DNA of 64,000 nucleotides, taken from the sequence record NC_031927.1. One strand, given 5' to 3'. The notes beneath the pieces were generated by a model. It worked only from the letters and a program-made list of their open reading frames with translations, was not told where the DNA came from and did no database searches. This document shows, one piece after another, positions 40,583-51,219 of this stretch. A program made the translations under genes and the position numbers. The stretch's first letter is position 1; each line of letters opens with the position of its first letter.

Positions 40583-40626
40583 AGTGTCCACTGCCCCATC
40601 ACAGGGGCTTTTTTATGCTCTATAAT
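40571..40626 (+). promoter_or_regulatory. Dispersed copy of dyad-hairpin-TATAAT element (nuclease-helicase/MTase locus)
   Basis: CCACTAGGTGAAGTGTCCAC, GCCCC..GGGGC hairpin, TATAAT; related copies at about 44222, 44608, 45781, 47625, 50022 (partial), 51137. Confidence 0.8.
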
Positions 40627-40648
40627 AATCACATACACACAGAGAACC

Positions 40649-42784
40649 ATGCACACTAAGAACTTCTATATGCAGATCATTCCAGGTGTGGATAATGCCT
40701 TTGGATTTGGTGATACTGAAGATACGTATGAGCAGCGTCAGAAGGGCTCTGACTACTCTAAGGTGGGTGGCTATGGTTTTGCCCTAGGTCAAAAGAAGTG
40801 GACTACACATGGTTGGTGGGAAGACCAGACAGTCATTGATAGGGCTCACCACCAGGATAAAGAAGTTCATAAATTTATTATGACTTTCCCTACTATGAGG
40901 AAGAAGGACGAGGTATTTACTTTTGAAAAGTCCTCAGGTCTTACTCTTGATATTATTAAGCATAAGATTGACGAGCAGTTCTTTTCTGGTGAGACAACAA
41001 ATCGTGTTGAACTTACTCCACGTAAGCACCAGAGTGAGTTCTTAGCTAAGGTTCAAGCAGAGTATCTTGAGTTCTTACTGTTCGCTAAGTGTAGAGCTGG
41101 TAAGTCTATTATGTCACTACTACACGTAAAAGAGCGAGGATATAAAGTAACTCTTATTGTTGCACGTATGACCTCCCCTAAGGGATCCTGGGAGAGTGAT
41201 AGTCGTGGGTTTACTAACTTCGACAATATGATATTCATTGACCTACAAGGTAATAAGAACTATGCTAAGGAGATTGAGTACTGGACTAATACTAATAAGC
41301 AGGTAGTTCTATTCGACACTGTTCAAGGTGCTATATCTAAGGACTTCAACATTGACTTCCTTATTTACGATGAGGCTCATATTGGAGCTAAGGATACTGC
41401 TAAGCAGTGGAAGTCCCTTAGGTCTATGATTGACTGCCCTATTCTATATGTAACAGGTACTGCCTATAAGATGGCAGATGACTTTAGTGAAGATAATAAG
41501 TTTGTATACTCATACTTTGAGGAGCAGTTAGATAAGAAGAATGGGCTCATTGAGCGCCCTAGTATGAATGTTATCCTAGCTAAGTATGAGACTGAAGAGT
41601 ATCAGGCTATCTATGGAGATGACCCAGATGCTATGAAGAACCTATTCCAGATGGATGGTTCTAAGTTCGCTCAACCAGCACTAGTGAGTGAGTTCATTAA
41701 GATGTACTTTATGAATGACCGTAGTATCCGTAAGTTTAGTGATCGCCTTCTTAATGATAGTAATCACATTTATATGACTCTACCTAGTGTGGCTGCTTGT
41801 TACGCATTCAGTGAGTTGCTAGCATCTACTAGGTTCGCTCCTCTAGTTGTTACTGGAGATAGTAAGAAGTCTAATAAGGATATCAGTAAGCATATTCAAG
41901 AGAACCCCACTGGCTCTATTGTTATCACTCGTACAGCTAACGTTTTAGGTGTTACTGCTGACGTTGATACTGTTATGAATTGTGCTGAAGGTAGCTCTAT
42001 TGAGTTCTGGACACAGTTCGCATTCCGTGGTGGTAGTGGTGACAATGACTGGAGAGTTATTGACTTCGCACCTCAACGTTGTCTTGAGTCTCTCCGTGAG
42101 ATGTATGTCTTAGCGTGTGAGAATGCACCTACTATCAGTGAGTTTGAACTACTTGACTATGTGAACGTTACTGAATGGGATAGGGGCTTCGAGACACTAA
42201 CACAGGAGCAGGTTGAGAACATTCTTGGCTCAGATCCAGCTGGTAGTGTACGTCTAATCTCAGGATTAACAACTGCATTGAATGTAGAACTACTAGCTGG
42301 TATGGGGTTCAATGCTAACCTCACTCCTGTTGATAGTAACATTGCTAAGCAGGTAGTTGTTAATGATAACGAAGCTAACGGTAAAGGTGCTCTTAGTCGC
42401 ACATCTACACCAGAAGAGAAGGAGAAGGCAGAGAGCCTACGTCGTGAGGTTATGCACGTTCAGGCTATTCTTGAGCGTATCCCTCTCTCTATCCTCCATA
42501 GTCATATGTTATCTACTACCATCACTGGTATTGATAGCCTCATCACAAGTGAAGCCTATCTGAATGATACTAGTGATTATGATGGTGTTCTAGCTAAGTA
42601 TATGGAGAAGGATCAGTCGTTCTATCAGCGTCTCAACCGCCGTGTGGCTGCTGTATCTCTCGATATTAAAGCACAGATGAACCGTGATCTAGTACAGACA
42701 CTTGATAAACTGTCCATCTCTGCTACCGCACAGATGCCTATCCCTGCTACACTACTAACTGAAATGCACACCAGTTATGCCTAA
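40649..42784 (+). CDS. SF2 helicase with N-terminal T5orf172/GIY-YIG-like domain (restriction subunit-like)
   Basis: N-terminal FYMQ...FGFGDT...YEQR...DKEVH...DEVF; PRKHQ, KCRAGKS (motif I), DEAH, VTGT (motif III), QFAFRGG (motif VI). Confidence 0.82.
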   Translation: MHTKNFYMQIIPGVDNAFGFGDTEDTYEQRQKGSDYSKVGGYGFALGQKKWTTHGWWEDQTVIDRAHHQDKEVHKFIMTFPTMRKKDEVFTFEKSSGLTLDIIKHKIDEQFFSGETTNRVELTPRKHQSEFLAKVQAEYLEFLLFAKCRAGKSIMSLLHVKERGYKVTLIVARMTSPKGSWESDSRGFTNFDNMIFIDLQGNKNYAKEIEYWTNTNKQVVLFDTVQGAISKDFNIDFLIYDEAHIGAKDTAKQWKSLRSMIDCPILYVTGTAYKMADDFSEDNKFVYSYFEEQLDKKNGLIERPSMNVILAKYETEEYQAIYGDDPDAMKNLFQMDGSKFAQPALVSEFIKMYFMNDRSIRKFSDRLLNDSNHIYMTLPSVAACYAFSELLASTRFAPLVVTGDSKKSNKDISKHIQENPTGSIVITRTANVLGVTADVDTVMNCAEGSSIEFWTQFAFRGGSGDNDWRVIDFAPQRCLESLREMYVLACENAPTISEFELLDYVNVTEWDRGFETLTQEQVENILGSDPAGSVRLISGLTTALNVELLAGMGFNANLTPVDSNIAKQVVVNDNEANGKGALSRTSTPEEKEKAESLRREVMHVQAILERIPLSILHSHMLSTTITGIDSLITSEAYLNDTSDYDGVLAKYMEKDQSFYQRLNRRVAAVSLDIKAQMNRDLVQTLDKLSISATAQMPIPATLLTEMHTSYA

Positions 42785-43823
42785 GCTTCTTATTGTAGGC
42801 GATCCTACGGGCTCCACCTCTCTTGATGCTATCAACAACAGGGGCTGGAGTCCAGAAGATATAACAGTGTGGGAGAACGATCCCCGTCACGTGTATGCTA
42901 TTAAGTGTATTAATGGTATAATAGATATTATATTAGATGACGATAAACTAACTAAACTGAAGGAATGTACTATGAAGTTTGACGTTATTATTGGTAACCC
43001 ACCTTATCAGAATAATACTAAGAATGGTGCTGGTACTGGATCAGGTAGTTCAGCTCTATACTTAGACTTTGTTAGTTTAGCTAAGAGTATTTTGAAGCCT
43101 GGTGGTACCATCTCACTAATTACTCCCACAAGTATTGTAAGTGGTAGTAGTGACAAGACTAAGTATCTTGTAGGTAAAGATGCATTGTATAGTGTGTCTT
43201 CTATTGACTTTACCGCTAACGAGCAGTTCAGCATCGGTGAGCGAGTATGTCGATGGACTGCTACTAATAGTGATGAGAGTATAGTAACTAAACTATCTGA
43301 TGGACGTGAGGTTGACCTTAGAGAGGTTCCTTTTGTTGTTGAGGACTATGAAGTTAGTAATATTGTTCAGTCTCTTCTAGAGGCACCTGGACCACGCATA
43401 GAGTTTTCTAACCGTGGTGGCTTTGCATCTAAGGGTAGCTCTATTAAGACAGATACTCAGACACCACAGACACCATACCTAGTTGACTTCAATGGTAAGG
43501 ATAAGTATGTGTCTGAAAAGTGCAATAACTACCATCAGCCTAAGATCTTTGCCCCTCAGCAGACTAATCCTAAGAACTTTGAGTTCTACTGTGCAGAGGA
43601 TAAAGGTGCTAGTCAGTCAACATACACCTGTCCATTCAATACCATTGAAGAGGCACAAGTAGCCGTTGATATTCTAAACAACCCATACTATCTCTGGATT
43701 GTAAATAAAGTACGTATTGCAAGTCGCTTACGTAAGACACATCTTGACAGATTTCCCATTGTTGATATAGAATCAATCCTAAGCAAAGAGCAAAAGTCCT
43801 ACATTGACAGTAACCCACTATGA
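42777..43823 (+). CDS. Eco57I-like adenine methyltransferase, catalytic (NPPY) + TRD part
   Basis: KFDVIIGNPPY, LYLDFV, LKPGG.ISLITP; motif I region degenerate (IVGDPTGS). Confidence 0.85.
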   Translation: MPKLLIVGDPTGSTSLDAINNRGWSPEDITVWENDPRHVYAIKCINGIIDIILDDDKLTKLKECTMKFDVIIGNPPYQNNTKNGAGTGSGSSALYLDFVSLAKSILKPGGTISLITPTSIVSGSSDKTKYLVGKDALYSVSSIDFTANEQFSIGERVCRWTATNSDESIVTKLSDGREVDLREVPFVVEDYEVSNIVQSLLEAPGPRIEFSNRGGFASKGSSIKTDTQTPQTPYLVDFNGKDKYVSEKCNNYHQPKIFAPQQTNPKNFEFYCAEDKGASQSTYTCPFNTIEEAQVAVDILNNPYYLWIVNKVRIASRLRKTHLDRFPIVDIESILSKEQKSYIDSNPL

Positions 43824-44221
43824 GTAAGAACAAGCATAATGAAAATGTAGGATCGGATATTGTACGTTCTAATGATCGTATTAATGAGACGGGTGAGGTA
43901 TTCACTCCTATGGAACTATGTCGTGAAATGGTCAACGAACTACCACTAGATGTTCTGCAGAATCCTAAGAGCACCTTTTTAGATAATTCTGCTGGTCACG
44001 GTAACTTTATCATCGCTCTCCGCGATAAGCTATTGGAATATCACGAGTTATCACATATCTTAGACAATATGCTCTATGCTGTTGAGTTTATGGAGGATAA
44101 TCACGCCGAGTTGTGTGAGAGAATAGGTGTGCCTGTTACTCACCCACATTATGTTAGAGCTGATGCTACCACATATGATTATAGCTTTGGTGAGCCTATA
44201 GGATTAGAGGCATTCTTCTAG
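43820..44221 (+). CDS. Short methyltransferase SAM-binding subunit (motifs X-I-II, no NPPY)
   Basis: GEVFTP, FLDNSAGHGNF, MLYAVE; no catalytic motif IV in 133 aa. Confidence 0.85.
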   Translation: MSKNKHNENVGSDIVRSNDRINETGEVFTPMELCREMVNELPLDVLQNPKSTFLDNSAGHGNFIIALRDKLLEYHELSHILDNMLYAVEFMEDNHAELCERIGVPVTHPHYVRADATTYDYSFGEPIGLEAFF

Positions 44222-44296
44222 CCACTTTGAGTAGTGTCCACTGCCCCAACACAGGGGCATTTTTAATGTTATGATTTATCCATCAGCTTAACGCAT

Positions 44297-44614
44297 ATGA
44301 TCGAAGCTATCGCAGCTCCAAACACACAGGTCACTGAAGAGGGTGGACTCTTCTACATCTCTATGAGCGTTGGTGCTGATGAGGTATGCACTGCTTGTTA
44401 TATGCGCGACAAGGCGCAGAGAGTGGTCATTATCCAATTAGATACACCAGTGGAGTATAGAGGCAATGGCTACGCCACAGCCCTCCTGGAGGGCATACAG
44501 AGGCGTGAGAAGACTGGTCCTATCCGTGTGATTAGTACTAGCCATGCCGTTGGTTTCTACAATAAGCTAGGATACATTGAAGTATCACCATACGTGTTCC
44601 AAAGCTCAAACTGA
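44297..44614 (+). CDS. GNAT-family acetyltransferase
   Basis: EYRGNGYATALL motif A and AVGFYNKLGY motif B. Confidence 0.88.
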   Translation: MIEAIAAPNTQVTEEGGLFYISMSVGADEVCTACYMRDKAQRVVIIQLDTPVEYRGNGYATALLEGIQRREKTGPIRVISTSHAVGFYNKLGYIEVSPYVFQSSN

Positions 44615-44675
44615 CCACTGAACCCCCACAGGGCACCTAAATGCCCTATACTATTCACATAAGCAACGGACACCA

Positions 44676-45569
44676 ATGACCAAGAACCTACACCTTGAGC
44701 ACCCAGAAGACCTTATCTTGTCTGGTGACCTATCAGTGCTTGACTGGTTCTCTACTATCTCCACCACCAGTGTGAAGATGGACGGCAGTGTAGCCATTGT
44801 ATGGGGCATCAACCCAGAGAATGGTAAGTTTTTCGTAGGTAAGAAGTCAGTATTCAATAAGAAGAAGGTTGAGATATGCTATACACCACAAGATATTAGG
44901 AAGTTCTACGGTGACCGTGAGGAACTAGCAGACATTCTCCTCACTTGCCTTGACTTCTTGCCCCGCACTGGTGGTATCTATCAAGGTGACTTCATTGGGC
45001 TGGGTGGTAACTCAAAATACACACCTAACACCATCACATATGACTTTGGCGCTCCTGTTGAGGAAGTCATTATCATTGCTCCTCACACATACTATGTTGG
45101 TGATACTATCAAGGGATGTGTTGCTCACCCACTATCACACCAATTAGAATCAACTGGTGATGTTCTGTTTGTTCAGCCTACCGTTGATTGTAAGTGTACC
45201 TTCTATGATTCTGTTGATGCTATCCGCACATCAGTGAAGAAGTCCAAGTTCTTGACTGATAAATCAGCAAAAGAGGTTCGTGTTATACTTAACGCATTCG
45301 TTCGCGAAGGTAAGTCCATCAGCCCACAACTACTAGAGCAAGTTGTAGGTGACTGGAATCTCACTATGTCCTACTTCCAAATCATTGACCTAAAGGAGCA
45401 GATGATGGAAGCTATGATAGTATATGATGGACCAAAGGCATTCATTGGTGATATGCCCGTAGCTTGCGAAGGCTATGTTCGCACCAATCGCCACGGTTCT
45501 ATGAAACTGGTTGATCGCTACCAGTTCGCACAAGCTAACTTCAACAACACCCGATTCAGGTCAAACTAA
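44676..45569 (+). CDS. Nucleotidyltransferase/RNA-ligase-like protein
   Basis: KMDGS (KxDG), YQGDF, CEGYV and MKLV match ligase motifs I, III, IV, V in order. Confidence 0.55.
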   Translation: MTKNLHLEHPEDLILSGDLSVLDWFSTISTTSVKMDGSVAIVWGINPENGKFFVGKKSVFNKKKVEICYTPQDIRKFYGDREELADILLTCLDFLPRTGGIYQGDFIGLGGNSKYTPNTITYDFGAPVEEVIIIAPHTYYVGDTIKGCVAHPLSHQLESTGDVLFVQPTVDCKCTFYDSVDAIRTSVKKSKFLTDKSAKEVRVILNAFVREGKSISPQLLEQVVGDWNLTMSYFQIIDLKEQMMEAMIVYDGPKAFIGDMPVACEGYVRTNRHGSMKLVDRYQFAQANFNNTRFRSN

Positions 45570-45861
45570 TGGATTGCACTAGATGTCTACACTACTATGA
45601 AATACGTGGGAGAAAGATATGTCGCTCTCCCCATCTTGATGAGGAAGCACCTGTTGAACAGGAGAGATCTAGTTTAGGTCAATGCAATCAAGATGGAAAG
45701 AACTTTGAATTTTGTGTTTATAGGAAGGCACGTCACGTGTTTTGGGGCTCAATATATGATGAAAATGCAACTAGACTAGACCACTATCCAAACTGACCAC
45801 TAACGTTCCACAAGGCACACAGATGCCTTATACTACATACATAGCAAACGAGGCTTACTAA

Positions 45862-46191
45862 ATGCTTATCAACTGGACAGATGAAGAGAGAGCAGCCGCT
45901 ACCCGTGGTGATGTAAACATCTTCATCCTCAACACCACTCCACAAGCTATCAAGGAGATGGACAAAGAACTACCCACTGATACACATATCATTGAGTACG
46001 TTATTGATGGTGAGACATCCTATGATGCTGTTAGAGGCTATAAGATGAGCGATATCTTCAATGTATACCACGATAAGTTTAGAAGAGACGACATCACTGC
46101 TCAAGTCATTAGTATCAAGAGTGGCTATGGTGTTATCAAACCCAAGCTTTATGGCTATCAAGCCGTTGAATCATCCAAGAAAACCAAGTAA
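45862..46191 (+). CDS. Hypothetical protein
   Basis: ATG after the repeat promoter at 45781. Confidence 0.72.
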   Translation: MLINWTDEERAAATRGDVNIFILNTTPQAIKEMDKELPTDTHIIEYVIDGETSYDAVRGYKMSDIFNVYHDKFRRDDITAQVISIKSGYGVIKPKLYGYQAVESSKKTK

Positions 46192-46197
46192 TTCATT

Positions 46198-46575
46198 ATG
46201 ACTAACACAACACCCGATCCAATAGACAATCTTCCTTATCAACCCGTTGCTCGTGATAGAAATGCTGAACAGCAACGCTTCCAGGAGCGCGTCCTAGTGC
46301 GCTCCACAGCCACTGGTTTCGAGCAGGGCATTGCTGCTATGGCTGGGCTGTTTACGGCTGGTCCTCTGGGCTCTCTGGCTGCCTGGGGGGCTCTCCGTGG
46401 TCTCCAAGGTAAGTGGGCACCCTGGTTCATCCTAGGCATCCCTGCTTCTGTTGCTCTCAACGTAGTTCAGTTGCTTATTATTGCTGCTATCTTTGGGGCA
46501 GTTGAGCCAGAAGCTGGAACAGACTATGAAGCACACCACATACAGGAGCAGCAAGAGCAAGTAACGAACATTTAA
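46198..46575 (+). CDS. Membrane protein
   Basis: Two hydrophobic Gly/Ala-rich segments. Confidence 0.7.
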   Translation: MTNTTPDPIDNLPYQPVARDRNAEQQRFQERVLVRSTATGFEQGIAAMAGLFTAGPLGSLAAWGALRGLQGKWAPWFILGIPASVALNVVQLLIIAAIFGAVEPEAGTDYEAHHIQEQQEQVTNI

Positions 46576-46844
46576 GTTTGTCTTGATTGGAGCACAAAAG
46601 TCTGTTATAATATGTGTGTAAATACTAACAGAGTAATTCATATAATAATGAGACACAATAACACAGACGCACTGATAAATGATTGCGAAGACTACCTACT
46701 ACACAGATATATTCCAATACATTCATATACAGGAGATGAAATCATAAAGCAAGCCATTAAGGAAGGTTATATGATGGACCTATTTTATAGACACTACTCA
46801 AAGTGACTACGGGGGGCAATATGCCCTCTTTTTTATGATATAAT

Positions 46845-47633
46845 ATGGAAACCAATTCAGAAACTATGAACAAGCTACTCAATGGTGAATGTCTTGAAGT
46901 TATGAAGACACTAGCTGATAATTCAATTGATATGGTTTTCTGTGACCTACCTTATGGTACTACACAGAACTCTTGGGATACTATCATCCCATTCGATGAG
47001 TTGTGGGCAGAGTATCATCGTATCGTCAAGATTGATGGTGCTATTGTACTAACAGCACAACCACCATTTGATAAGGTCTTAGCTTGTTCAAATCTAAAAG
47101 ACTTCCGTTATGAATGGATATGGGAGAAGAATAAAGCAACTGGGCACCTAAATGCTAAGAAGATGCCTATGAAGGCACACGAGAACATACTAGTATTTTA
47201 TAGAAAGCTTCCTACATATAACCCACAGATGACCACAGGTCATAAGCCAATGAATGCAGTATTGCCTAAGAGCAATATGCCTGCACCAAAGGAGAAGAGA
47301 AACTATAACCACGTAGAAGAGCGACTAGGTAATCCTGGTGGTGGAACTAGTAGGTATCCAAGAGATACTGTTAGGTTCCCCGTTATCAACAATGATGACC
47401 CAAAGAAGTTCCACCCAACACAGAAACCTATCCCCTTGATTGAGTACTTCATCAAGACATATTCTAATCCAGGTGATGTTGTACTAGACAATTGTATGGG
47501 CTCAGGTTCTACCTGTATTGCTGCATCTAATCTAGATCGACAGTTTGTTGGTATTGAGATGAGTGAGGAATATTACAACCTAGCAGTTGAGTGGGTCGAA
47601 TCCGAACGTAGACTCACCCAGTTCTTTAACTGA
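46845..47633 (+). CDS. Beta-class N6-adenine/N4-cytosine DNA methyltransferase
   Basis: GECLEVM, DLPYG (motif IV), KAHENILVF, HPTQKP, VLDNCMGSGST (motif I after IV). Confidence 0.95.
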   Translation: METNSETMNKLLNGECLEVMKTLADNSIDMVFCDLPYGTTQNSWDTIIPFDELWAEYHRIVKIDGAIVLTAQPPFDKVLACSNLKDFRYEWIWEKNKATGHLNAKKMPMKAHENILVFYRKLPTYNPQMTTGHKPMNAVLPKSNMPAPKEKRNYNHVEERLGNPGGGTSRYPRDTVRFPVINNDDPKKFHPTQKPIPLIEYFIKTYSNPGDVVLDNCMGSGSTCIAASNLDRQFVGIEMSEEYYNLAVEWVESERRLTQFFN

Positions 47634-47694
47634 CCACTGAACCACCACAGGGCACCCAAATGCCCTATACTATATTCATCAACCAAAGGGAACA

Positions 47695-47862
47695 ATGATC
47701 AAGTCACAAGTTCAGCGCATCGTTCGCGAAGTAGCTACTACTCAAGGTGCTACGCTCACACGTGATGAGAAGTGGTCCGTGTTCCTTAACGTCTGTGATG
47801 GTCTCTATCGTGACGGGCGCATCACACTCAAGCAACACGACAACTGGACATCCCCTTTCTGA
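47695..47862 (+). CDS. Small hypothetical protein (55 aa)
   Basis: Manual ORF MIKSQVQRIVREVA...NWTSPF after repeat promoter and AAGGGAAC RBS. Confidence 0.7.
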   Translation: MIKSQVQRIVREVATTQGATLTRDEKWSVFLNVCDGLYRDGRITLKQHDNWTSPF

Positions 47863-48013
47863 GTATAACAATGATCACCCAAGACGACCGCGATTTCGTA
47901 AACTTTCTGTTCGGTAAGTTGCTTACTGAGACAGATACTGATATGATTGATCTACACGATGACGATACTGCTGGTATCGACGCACTTGAATTTGAACAAC
48001 TCACCCTCGCTAT

Positions 48014-48367
48014 TTGATTATGAGCATCCTTACACAAGAGTCTACACAAAAACTTGCTGAGGCTATTGCACAAGATGTATTCGCATACATCTCCGAAGAT
48101 GGTCGCTACCTTGACGGTGTGATGAACACCATTGAGCCTGCTATTGTACACGTTATTGGTCAAACAAGCCCCGAGCTAGTTGGTGAGCTTGGTTGCGCTA
48201 TTATGGGTATGATTTGTATCCCTAGTGACCCAGATGTATACCAAGATGACCTATGGAAGACACGATATGAGCGACTCTATCGCTATGTGAAGCACACATA
48301 TGCTGAGAGTTACATTGATGGTGCTGAGTATGGTATAATTGCTAGTGATGAAGTTTACGGATACTGA
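48014..48367 (+). CDS. Hypothetical protein
   Basis: ORF track; co-oriented cluster. Confidence 0.65.
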   Translation: MIMSILTQESTQKLAEAIAQDVFAYISEDGRYLDGVMNTIEPAIVHVIGQTSPELVGELGCAIMGMICIPSDPDVYQDDLWKTRYERLYRYVKHTYAESYIDGAEYGIIASDEVYGY

Positions 48368-48563
48368 TTATGCCTGCACATAGTAATATGGGTCAATATA
48401 GACTCACTGATATTCAGGTAGATCTTATTCTCCATTGTTTGGAGTATACAAGAAACCTTACTATTGAGGAAGACAATGAGAGGAGGAAGATTGTAGAATC
48501 ACTACAGTCTGGAGTATTACCACCACCACCTCATACCATAGAAGAAGACCCCTACGCCAACTA

Positions 48564-48959
48564 TTGCGACATCTAATGCCTAAAACAAAGCAACCCAAAC
48601 TAACACAAGAAGAGCTATTCCCTCACGGTAGGGAGTTTGGCTATCGCCTACAACTTGAAGAGCGTATTGAAGGTCTAGGAACTATTGCTTGGTTTCAGTG
48701 TGAGTTCCACTTGACTAAACACGTAGAAAGATATAGAATAACCAAAGGTAAAATTGATGTGATGAAAGGGGCAACCCCCCTCACCAAAGACCCATTTACC
48801 CCTAAACGTACTAGGAAGGCTAGTGGTACCAAGGCATCTCAAGCATCAAAAACCAAAAAACCTGTAAAAACAGCAGCCAAGACCAAGAGTACCCCTCGCA
48901 CATCTAAAACTGCTAAAAAAGAGGTTTTTAGTAATCTAGACACATTCTTTTCTAAATGA
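48564..48959 (+). CDS. Hypothetical protein with Lys/Thr-rich basic tail
   Basis: WFQCEFHL.KHVERY core; KTKKPVKTAAKTK histone-like tail. Confidence 0.65.
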   Translation: MRHLMPKTKQPKLTQEELFPHGREFGYRLQLEERIEGLGTIAWFQCEFHLTKHVERYRITKGKIDVMKGATPLTKDPFTPKRTRKASGTKASQASKTKKPVKTAAKTKSTPRTSKTAKKEVFSNLDTFFSK

Positions 48960-50034
48960 ATAACCCATTGAGTGCTATAAAGCACACTAGAACAACATAT
49001 AGTAGGCAATATCAGAAAAACTATGTTGAGGTATTAGTCCAATTTAAGGATGAGCCTGAAGCATGGATACCCCTTGAAACTTTACTAGCACTTAAAGAAC
49101 AATGATTGAACTATTCAGTACAGTAAATTTTACTCCATTAGAAGCTTCTAAAGCAGCACTTTTAGCGTTGCTGATTGGTGGCATAGTCTACTACGCCATA
49201 TTTTTTTTGCTTCAAAAATGGATTTCTTTATCTGTTAGACTTGAAAGTCCTTGGTCAGAAATTGTATTTTATGTTCCGCTTATTTTTGGAGCATGGCTCG
49301 CTGTTTTCTCCGCTTTAATTTCCAAATGATTGAACTATCTCTTATCACACTACTCAATACAATGGCTCCACGCTATTGTGAATACAAGCGTAGTGGCTTA
49401 AATGATACAAAAGCAACTCTACTATCATACAGTGAGATGCATGACGAATACCCATCAGCTGCTATTAGAAAGGCAGTGCTTAATGGTAGGGGATTAGAAG
49501 CAATTGCTGTCGCTATGGTAGCAACAACTTGTCCACTTGATGCAATAAAAGACAATGACTAAACCACTCAAAACATATCACGTTAAGGTAAAGTTCCTTG
49601 ATGACCTAAAGTATGGTGAGTTTATCACAGCACCATCAGAAAAAGAAGCCCTCAAACTATTTGTAGAGGAGTATTTGTATGTTGCATCGGAGAGGGAAGA
49701 ATGAACAATAAACTATATGAACAGCACGATGATGAGAGTATTGAAGCACTCAATACTATCGACACATTGAAGCGTAGGATTATTGAATTAGAAGCAGAGA
49801 TTGTAACACTTAAAGCACGAATGAGGGATATGGGATGAGTTTTTCACCAGCACTAGGTATATTAGTTGAGTATAAGGGAAGCGTAGGTGAGATTAAGTTC
49901 ATTGATGACGTATATCTCACCATATGCACAAAGAGTAAGACTGATGGGATGATAGGTGACCTATGTTTGGTTGTCTACAAGCCAGAATGGGACCTAATCA
50001 AGATGATTGGTGATCGTAATAGACAGTAAGTAAA

Positions 50035-50739
50035 GTGTCCACTGCCCTCAGTGGTATTCTTCCTATTCTCTTGAGACAAGAATTTCCAGATGCTGAAATT
50101 TGCTGCCTTGAGTATAATAATATGTTTGTAAAACATCTAGAAACTCTTGGCTTTATCACTTATACATCTAAAGACACACTTCCTATGAATTTTGACTTAA
50201 CTATAGGCAACCCACCATATGGGAATAGAGCTTCATTAGCAATTAAGTTTGTTAATAAGGGGTTAGAGTTATCTGGTCGTGTTGATATGGTACTACCCCT
50301 ATCATTTAATAAACCATCAATACAAAACTCAATTGACCCATATTCTGAATGTATATTCAGCGAAGAACTACCTGCCGATACATTCCCCAATGGAATTAGG
50401 GCAGTCCGCCAAATATGGGTAAAGTCAAAGACTAAGAGGGAGCTAGTTCCCCTACCAACTACACACTCAGACTTTGAGTTTATTAAATGGGAAGATAGAG
50501 ACACTGCCGACCTAATGATTGGGGCAGTAGGCTCTGGTCCTTCTGGTAGAGTCTACACAGAGAACTTCAGTCATTATCAATGCAAGCATAGTTTCATTAA
50601 ATGTAAGTCTCAGGAGATTATTGATAGGTTGGTTGAGATGGGACCTGAACTGAGAGAAACTTCTAAAGCTCAAAATGGTAGAGGTGGTGTATGTAAGTCT
50701 GATATTGTTACACTGTACATTAGTAAGTATGATTCATGA
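50035..50739 (+). CDS. Second Eco57I-like methyltransferase catalytic (NPPY) + TRD part
   Basis: NFDLTIGNPPYG, LAIKFVNKG, VLPLSF; no intact FxGxG; start uncertain (GTG lies inside a repeat dyad). Confidence 0.82.
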   Translation: MSTALSGILPILLRQEFPDAEICCLEYNNMFVKHLETLGFITYTSKDTLPMNFDLTIGNPPYGNRASLAIKFVNKGLELSGRVDMVLPLSFNKPSIQNSIDPYSECIFSEELPADTFPNGIRAVRQIWVKSKTKRELVPLPTTHSDFEFIKWEDRDTADLMIGAVGSGPSGRVYTENFSHYQCKHSFIKCKSQEIIDRLVEMGPELRETSKAQNGRGGVCKSDIVTLYISKYDS

Positions 50740-51137
50740 GTAAGAACAGGCACAACCTGGATGTTGGTTCATCCATTGATAGAAGCGATGAGCGTATTGC
50801 AGAGACACAAGAGGTATTCACTCCCATTTCTCTATGTGCATCTATGGTCAATGATATTGATGAAGATACACTCAAGAATCCATCCAGTAAGTTTCTAGAC
50901 AACTCTGCTGGTTCTGGCAACTTCTTGGTTGCCCTCCGCGATGAGCTATTGGAATATCACGAGTTATCACATATCTTAGATAATATGCTATATGCGGTTG
51001 AGCTTATGGAAGACAATCACGCCGAGTTATGTGAGAGGTTAGGTGTTCCTGTCACCCATCCACACTATGTCTGCCACAATGCACTCACATATGATTATAG
51101 CTTCGGTGAGCTTGTAGGATTAGAGGCATTCTTCTAG
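50736..51137 (+). CDS. Second short methyltransferase SAM-binding subunit, paralogue of 43820-44221
   Basis: EVFTP, FLDNSAGSGNF; the C-terminal half is nearly identical to 43820-44221 in both protein and DNA. Confidence 0.88.
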   Translation: MSKNRHNLDVGSSIDRSDERIAETQEVFTPISLCASMVNDIDEDTLKNPSSKFLDNSAGSGNFLVALRDELLEYHELSHILDNMLYAVELMEDNHAELCERLGVPVTHPHYVCHNALTYDYSFGELVGLEAFF

Positions 51138-51219
51138 CCACTTTCAATAGTGTCCACTAATACACCACAGCCCACCTAGGTGGGTTATACTATATTCAAC
51201 AAGCAAAGCAAACTAGCCA

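Follow-up and report, generated by a model that had tools for sequence, protein, structure and literature searches.

Two adjacent genes of Synechococcus phage S-CAM7 as the probable halves of one amino-methyltransferase

Background

What kind of protein is a methyltransferase that begins at its catalytic motif? The question is raised by two adjacent genes, gp076 and gp077, in a stretch of 64,000 nucleotides (the window) that matches Synechococcus phage S-CAM7 isolate 0910CC49 (NC_031927 / KU686212) with 100% identity and equal coordinates. S-CAM7 is a marine cyanophage, a T4-like cyanomyovirus of the Kyanoviridae. RefSeq lists both gene products as hypothetical proteins (gp076, 50122-50739; gp077, 50736-51137). 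The initial annotation read them as the second copy of a two-gene methyltransferase module, in which a constant chain binds S-adenosylmethionine (SAM) and a variable chain carries the target-recognition domain. From sequence comparison we consider it probable that 50185-50739 and 50736-51137 together encode a single amino-methyltransferase in two polypeptides, most likely a DNA N6-adenine enzyme. We refer to this gene pair as locus 2 and to a related gene set upstream (gp055, gp056 and gp057) as locus 1; the features of both are collected in Table 1.

Complementary motifs on adjacent genes

The two co-oriented genes of locus 2 carry complementary, non-overlapping sets of methyltransferase motifs. 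In gp076 we find motif IV (F-D-L-T-I-G-N-P-P-Y, 50191-50220), which does not vary among 24 relatives. Behind it come the remainder of the catalytic half and, at the C-terminus, about 100 amino acids presumed to form the target-recognition part. The small chain, gp077, lacks motif IV and contains motif X (E-V-F-T-P, with FTP at residues 28-30), motif I (F53...G59-x-G61-N-F), motif II (A-V-E-L-M-E-D-N, a strand with an acidic end) and motif III (V-C-x-[DN]-A-L), all of them conserved among its cyanophage homologues. Motifs I and X of the module are thus found in the small chain only.

Comparison with single-chain enzymes places the division between the two genes at a specific point of the fold. 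A profile of the small family matches residues 25-160 of CamA (E 1e-10) and residues 8-99 of M.BseCI, and the match in CamA stops just before its F-D-Y-I-V-G-N-P-P-Y. The profile of the gp056 family, the large chain of locus 1, matches CamA residues 154-283 (E 2e-7), starting from the strand that bears the CamA NPPY, so that a single solved chain is tiled by the two families, one directly after the other. A PADLOC type II methyltransferase profile aligns with the gp076 core from profile position 96 onward. Where a relative is a single chain, its NPPY follows FTP at a distance of about 100 residues, which is exactly where the small protein ends. From the tiling and this spacing we place the cut at the junction of strands 1-3, which bind the cofactor, and strands 4-7, which are catalytic. 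These two halves of the catalytic domain have been discussed as an ancient internal duplication (PMC7544214).

At both loci the large and the small gene share four nucleotides, ATGA, in which the TGA of the former and the ATG of the latter lie in different frames, and translation of the pair is probably coupled through this overlap. A programmed frameshift fusing the two chains was set aside, as the overlaps vary from 1 to 44 nucleotides and no slippery site was seen on reading the junction.

Naturally fused forms of the two halves also occur. The 415-residue p090 protein of Aeromonas phage Aeh1 has NPPY at residue 9 and a small-like C-terminal domain with FTP at residue 296, which matches gp077 with E 1e-12 and the family profile with E 7.6e-26. 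This order, that of the beta class, is shared by the fused proteins P0051, P0102, P0113 and P0159, while many other fused proteins have the gamma order; in none of the fused forms did we find a second N-terminal half. The family of Aeh1-type fusions is listed in PHROGs as phrog_11371, 'unknown function', and a word search with the beta-order fusion P0051 returned partial matches only, to its SAM half.

Taken as a mechanism, the 184-residue large chain would supply strand 4 with NPPY, what remains of the catalytic half and, at its C-terminus, a small domain for recognition, and the 133-residue chain would supply the N-terminal helix with motif X and strands 1-3 with motifs I-III, which would hold SAM; the break between the genes would coincide with the junction between both halves of the Rossmann-like sheet. 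The resulting gene order, catalytic, recognition, cofactor, would be the motif order of the beta class, and the ATGA overlap would couple translation of the two chains. The pair forms a cassette, bounded by repeats of the promoter-stem-loop (PeSL) type, that phage strains exchange, and its likely role would be to mark phage DNA so that host restriction spares it. Motif content, the tiling onto solved enzymes, fused relatives, gene linkage, selection and the cassette borders are seen in the sequences; from them we infer that the chains assemble into an active enzyme, that it acts on DNA, and what it does for the phage.

Linkage of the two genes across phages

A survey of the gene pair across phage genomes, which the initial annotation had proposed, bears out the linkage. 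We collected 80 viral loci from IMG/VR that contain a close relative of the small gene and searched their surroundings with the strict pattern N-x-P-[YF]. An open reading frame (ORF) with this pattern lies directly upstream of the small gene in 51 of the 80 loci, nearly always overlapping it by 1-44 nucleotides, and one ORF away in another 17. Taken together, about 70 viral contigs have the small gene behind an NPPY gene. The other 12 comprise nine contig ends and three loci outside the strict pattern, where NPPY had been seen in the upstream ORF at first pass. Conversely, a small gene lies downstream, directly or one ORF off, in all 33 close relatives of the gp076 core; these came from an alignment-based search of the loci, whereas one with the single gp076 sequence gave no match. 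More distant relatives of the core, single chains of about 265 residues, contain canonical motifs X and I themselves, and the small gene is absent beside them. The small-family profile recognises a copy in cis in only two of 87 partner proteins, the fused Aeh1 protein and the gamma-type CC03_055.

The partners differ in architecture. In four loci the upstream partner is one protein of about 1,040-1,110 residues with N-x-P-[YF] near residue 784-857 (L054:385-3504, L077:191-3517, L082:224-3502 and L087:310-3501); Pfam assigns ResIII helicase and Eco57I domains to those of L054 and L077, T5orf172 and ResIII to that of L087, and only T5orf172 to that of L082. Unusual variants of motif IV occur among the partners, with N-F-P-F in S-CAM7 isolate 0809CC03, N-Y-P-Y in S-SKS1-type proteins and N-F-P-Y in some contigs (L002:15228-16181, L005:3659-5038). 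The T4-like Klebsiella phage PKO111 (L006:991-2926) has a split arrangement, in which a 495-residue protein with NPPF at residue 239 is followed by an overlapping 153-residue small chain; by eye, the N-terminus of the former has the look of a GIY-YIG nuclease, and RefSeq gives the name 'DNA methyltransferase' only to the small chain. In S-CAM7 0910SB42, ACG-2014f and Bellamy, proteins of about 190-200 residues are encoded next to the small gene, the methyltransferase and the helicase, and the order of the genes takes three different forms (L003:5662-6273, L004:5486-6088, L009:2939-3502). Their sequence (G-[IV]-D-G ... V-Q-x-K-[FY]-K) reads as that of a putative PD-(D/E)xK nuclease; Pfam gives no match.

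The start of the large chain

The ORF of gp076 can be extended upstream to a GTG at 50035, giving 234 codons with NPPY at residue 59. Relatives of gp076 share a conserved core of about 184 residues that starts M-K-F-D-V-[VI]-I-G-N-P-P-Y-G; 5' of it they have several mutually unrelated extensions of about 55 residues, or none. The closest relative of locus 2, on the environmental contig L170, is about 93-95% identical from ATG 50185 through the large gene into the small gene and unrelated upstream, where an in-frame stop lies five codons before its ATG. Starts at the same NPPY-first methionine occur in P-SSM2 gene 036 (193 residues), in P0001 and in several IMG/VR genes. In an AlphaFold2 model of the 234-residue protein, residues 1-50 have a predicted local distance difference test score (pLDDT) of 37-61 and the core one of 75-96.

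Because homology to L170 begins only at ATG 50185 and the frame upstream of it is closed there, GTG 50035 is probably not the start; the functional large gene is probably 50185-50739 and the module 50185-51137. The initial annotation correctly placed this GTG within a truncated repeat (the copy at 50034-50043) but probably erred in taking it as the start of the gene. A search for relatives of the 47-codon leader (50044-50184) among sequenced phages found them in S-CAM7 isolates only. Judged by its alignment position and the low-confidence model, 50048-50184 is probably a relic or leader, outside the functional protein, left by recombination at the repeat that removed the first strand of an extension. 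As the leader has no relatives beyond the S-CAM7 isolates, the label 'truncated extension' depends on that position and that model only.

Two small genes with separate histories

The window holds a second small gene, gp057 at locus 1. As the initial annotation stated, the two are paralogues: both proteins have 133 residues, and they align without gaps at 75% identity (100/133; E 9e-77). At the DNA level no similarity is seen 5' of the ATG; homology starts exactly there and passes the stop into a shared tail, ...TTCTTCTAGCCACTTT..TAGTGTCCACT (also given as ...CTAGCCACTTT..TAGTGTCCACT), beyond which it is lost. The continuation of DNA identity past the stop into the next repeat, likewise noted initially, was thus seen again in the pairwise alignment of both loci, and so were the other features that the initial annotation had read from the sequence.

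The further claim that the module had been duplicated fared less well. Between gp057 and gp077 the synonymous divergence (dS) amounts to about 1, and a tree of 77 small proteins does not place them as sisters; on these two grounds a recent intragenomic duplication was rejected. Their identity is a mosaic (43820-44260 against 50736-51176): 51-73% in 45-nucleotide windows over the first 210 nucleotides, 82-96% in windows spanning 181-330, and 84-93% over the last 50 nucleotides of the gene and 20 nucleotides past the stop. This pattern suggests separate acquisition of the two genes, as two cassettes, followed by partial gene conversion between the loci, which fits better than duplication.

Decay of the small genes, another possibility raised initially, was rejected on the ratio of non-synonymous to synonymous substitution rates (dN/dS), which is 0.1-0.2 in every unsaturated comparison; within every partner class the median is 0.06-0.18. 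The gp076 core differs from that of L170 by 32 synonymous and 10 non-synonymous changes (dN/dS 0.07). By these ratios both the core and the small genes are under strong purifying selection.

Exchange between phage isolates

The window contains 12 exact copies of the repeat AGTGTCCACT, and 16 with at most one mismatch where 5.6 are expected; none of 100 shuffles reached 16. Copies lie at 40583-40592, 44233-44242, 50034-50043 and 51149-51158, among others. In most of them a GC hairpin and then a TATACT/TATAAT box follow, about 25-35 nucleotides ahead of the next start codon; the copy at 50034 has neither. This anatomy is that of the PeSL cassettes of T4-type phages (PMC2839356, PMC4122927).

Alignment with isolate 0809CC03 (MT586120) shows 98% homology over 43819-50047, which stops in the left repeat and resumes at 51144, at the right repeat. 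The sister isolates replace 50048-51143 as one unit, with repeats at corresponding places in both. Between the breakpoints 0809CC03 carries a different large gene of 317 residues (motif IV N-F-P-F near the N-terminus), a divergent small gene (136 residues, 68% DNA identity) and one extra small ORF, and every unit of this insert is bounded by the repeat. To judge from these alignments, the large and small gene of locus 2 move as a unit, and the proposal that the module had moved through the repeat element is supported by an exchange whose breakpoints lie within repeats.

At locus 1 the swap takes another form. Its left break lies at the repeat near 40583-40656 and its right break exactly at the ATG of gp057, so that gp057 is retained (93-96% identical) under three unrelated upstream cassettes in three isolates. 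On the tree of 77 small proteins partner architecture is clustered, with 20 changes against 38.5 for shuffled labels, and well-supported clades of near-identical small proteins include different partner types. The sequences in the tree thus show frequent exchange of partners; as related rows share labels, compatibility of small chains with new partners is not demonstrated by it.

Locus 1 and its neighbourhood

Alignment of the upstream NPPY proteins of the two loci is confined to a stretch of about 55 residues at motif IV (31% identity, E 1e-4), in agreement with the initial statement that they share little else. RefSeq names gp055 'type II R-M restriction subunit' (R-M, restriction-modification) and gp056 'DNA methyltransferase', and lists gp057 as hypothetical. 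A single PADLOC type IIG restriction-methylase profile, ordered helicase, small, NPPY, is matched by gp055 at positions 168-297, by gp057 at 864-934 and by gp056 at 1003-1083. By this match locus 1 (40670-44221) looks like a type ISP/IIG-like enzyme split into three genes.

With the separate gene gp064, recognised through its Pfam match, the two loci make three methyltransferase gene sets inside about 10 kb, where the initial annotation had proposed three activities. Just 3' of locus 1 lie an ORF for a GNAT acetyltransferase-like protein of 105 residues (44297-44614) and one for a DUF6267 protein (E 3e-76; 44676-45569).

Table 1. Features of the two loci and their surroundings (window coordinates)
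Feature	Position	Strand	Remarks
Left border repeat, AGTGTCCACT + 4 nucleotides	50034..50047	+	Truncated promoter-hairpin repeat copy; homology with 0809CC03 stops here
In-frame open leader	50048..50184	+	Low pLDDT; relatives only in S-CAM7 isolates; L170 homology begins at 50185
Large chain (gp076 core), 184 residues	50185..50739	+	NPPY (motif IV) at 50209-50220, nine residues past the Met
Small chain (gp077), 133 residues	50736..51137	+	Motif X (FTP) at 50817-50825; motif I (F-L-D-N-S-A-G-S-G-N-F) at 50892-50924; then motifs II and III
Right border	51144..51191	+	AGTGTCCACT repeat 51149-51158, GC hairpin 51170-51185, TATACT 51186-51191; 0809CC03 homology resumes at 51144
Small-chain paralogue gp057, locus 1	43820..44221	+	Protein alignment with gp077
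NPPY methyltransferase gp056, 348 residues, locus 1	42777..43823	+	NPPY at residue 74; own N-terminal three-strand extension
Superfamily 2 helicase-like gp055, locus 1	40670..42784	+	Within the variable cassette upstream of gp057
Single-chain beta-class N6/N4 DNA methyltransferase gp064, separate	46845..47633	+	Pfam N6_N4_Mtase, E 1e-29

Observations that weigh against one enzyme in two chains

Several observations weigh against this interpretation. Neither chain of locus 2 reaches the relevant Pfam threshold, the small chain scoring 14.8-17.1 against 20.4 for N6_Mtase and gp076 18.0 against 25.3 for Eco57I; a precomputed PF07669 hit exists in several gp076 relatives, and gp056 is above its threshold (55.4). 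The AlphaFold2 model of gp056 has a complete M.TaqI/CamA-like fold (pLDDT 89, predicted template modelling score 0.83), its strands 1-3 being formed by its own first 62 residues. Other partners encoded beside a small gene, CC03_055 and a 564-residue enzyme on contig L171, have canonical motifs X and I of their own, and small genes next to such complete-looking partners remain under purifying selection (median dN/dS 0.15-0.18). The model of gp076 is no closer to DNA enzymes than to the rRNA adenine methyltransferases PH1948, METTL5, Erm and KsgA, and its resemblance to either group is weak (template modelling score about 0.35-0.4). Finally, around the gene of a distant small-chain homologue of 198 residues with a charged C-terminal tail (L173:4001-4597), the 4 kb to each side contain no NPPY gene, a hint that some members of the wider small family may act alone.

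Since the small gene is kept under selection beside gp056, CC03_055 and the L171 enzyme, completing a missing half cannot be the whole role of its product. The N-terminal extensions of the large chains lack motif X and the canonical glycine loop, and at least three unrelated types of them are common to the gp056 and gp076 families. An hhalign comparison of the large-chain family, extensions included, with the small-chain family gave no match (probability 0.3%), and by this comparison the extensions are not recognisably derived from the small domain. Strand 2 of gp056 ends in an acidic residue, E33, that hardly varies within the family, and a canonical small SAM-binding gene always follows gp056 despite its complete-looking fold. 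Beside partners of this kind the small chain must have a further or a different task: it might take the place of the degenerate extension, contribute motif X, or be an activator common to several enzymes. Where the partner starts at NPPY, as gp076 does, the natural interpretation is that the small chain completes the fold. The initial picture of a constant SAM-binding chain with a variable recognition chain therefore holds in part: a conserved SAM-binding chain working with a variable catalytic and recognition chain is the best reading of the module, but it is not uniform, as gp056 models as a complete enzyme.

Alternative explanations

We think it unlikely, but to be taken seriously, that the small protein is in general an accessory subunit, as TRMT112 is for METTL5 and others: a shared activator, stabiliser or SAM sensor bound outside many methyltransferases, even complete ones. 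Precisely the small chain's role beside complete-looking partners keeps weight on this explanation: the predicted completeness of gp056, the canonical motifs of CC03_055 and of the L171 enzyme, the selection on small genes beside partners with their own N-terminal half, and the retention of near-identical small genes beside three unrelated cassettes in three isolates are all what an accessory subunit would lead one to expect. It does not explain why NPPY-first partners, the closest gp076 relative among them, are without strands 1-3 and so unable to bind SAM alone, nor why proteins with the small domain fused in cis have no other N-terminal half; the small protein is, moreover, itself a canonical motif X-I-II-III half by profile.

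Distinctly less probable is a two-chain RNA adenine methyltransferase, acting for example on rRNA or tRNA. Fold and profile comparisons of the gp076 core do place PH1948, METTL5, ErmE, TrmN and KsgA first, but these matches are weak and limited to the shared Rossmann core, whereas PADLOC type II DNA methyltransferase profiles match the gp076 core with E 1e-9 and the small-chain family also serves Eco57I-type partners, some of them fused to a helicase. Because the structural model of gp076 favours neither kind of enzyme, we infer DNA as the target from this context.

That locus 2 is a decaying remnant, whose large gene was cut short on the N-terminal side at the repeat and no longer works, so that only the small gene matters, perhaps for the locus-1 enzyme, is very improbable: the repeat at 50034 is truncated and the next 47 codons model poorly, but the 184-residue core is intact, with a dN/dS of 0.07 against a relative that has the same starting methionine, and NPPY-first partners of 179-202 residues recur in other phages.

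Relation to known systems

With one enzyme in two chains as the preferred reading, its nearest known counterparts are the gamma-class N6-adenine DNA methyltransferases (M.TaqI, CamA, M.BseCI; Pfam Eco57I/N6_Mtase), which have the same motifs X, I-III and IV (NPPY), and of which M.TaqI and CamA are matched by the gp056 model. The phage system differs in that its cofactor and catalytic halves are on separate polypeptides and their gene order is reversed. In this order, catalytic, recognition and SAM-binding, it is like the beta-class amino-methyltransferases (motif order IV-TRD-I, TRD being the target-recognition domain; PMC7544214); unlike them, the phage family is Eco57I/gamma-like by sequence, not N6_N4_Mtase, and its IV...TRD...X-I-III order runs across two genes in the window and along one chain in Aeh1 p090, P0051, P0102 and P0113.

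M.AquI (cited in PMC5944983) is a naturally split C5 methyltransferase, for which two adjacent genes, those of its alpha and beta subunits, are likewise both required; the phage enzyme would be an amino-methyltransferase, cut between motifs III and IV, with a small piece that joins many partners. TRMT112 (PDB 6h2u) is similarly a small protein of about 130 residues, associated with several class I methyltransferase catalytic subunits. It is unrelated in sequence to the phage protein, in which motifs X and I-III mark one half of a methyltransferase fold. PeSL cassettes of T4-type phages share the promoter and stem-loop repeat flanks and the isolate breakpoints within the repeat (PMC2839356, PMC4122927); the cargo in S-CAM7 is a co-adapted two-gene enzyme rather than a single small ORF.

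In the full-text literature we found natural split C5 enzymes and engineered split enzymes, as well as one brief reference to 'split' type II enzymes built from two or three subunits (PMC4335053). A search of the same literature gave no account of an amino-methyltransferase whose motifs X-I-III lie on a subunit of their own, though its coverage is incomplete and the result is weak evidence. PHROGs lists the small family as phrog_4376 and the gp076 core family as phrog_5172, both with 'unknown function'.

Implications

By analogy with phage orphan methyltransferases in general, DNA adenine methylation that shields phage DNA from host restriction is the most likely role of the pair.

To date the small family is known from viruses only; of the 1,275 members of its closest ESM Atlas cluster, all those with a record are viral. 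Its gamma-order fused, split and beta-order fused forms occur at 40-57% identity. A wider proposal, which we put forward tentatively and hold to be possible rather than probable, is that the 133-residue protein is a free-standing, exchangeable SAM-binding half-domain, a hub for NPPY-first chains, for enzymes with a degenerate or complete N-terminal half and for the proteins of about 1,040-1,110 residues that join a ResIII-type helicase to a methyltransferase region, most of them with an Eco57I hit and some with an N-terminal T5orf172 domain as well; that it may cross-pair between loci, as the initial annotation had suggested; and that the family records circular permutation by gene fission and re-fusion, not by duplication.

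The pair thus gives a proposed function to an abundant viral family, PHROG 4376, and would be a natural amino-methyltransferase cut exactly between its cofactor and catalytic halves. With split, gamma-order and beta-order forms all present in a single family, the old question of how methyltransferase classes were permuted can be put to the test. A small portable SAM-binding half that activates NPPY-first chains could also help to engineer split methyltransferases. For the phage, the split design would allow methylation specificity to be changed by swapping one gene while the cofactor subunit is kept.

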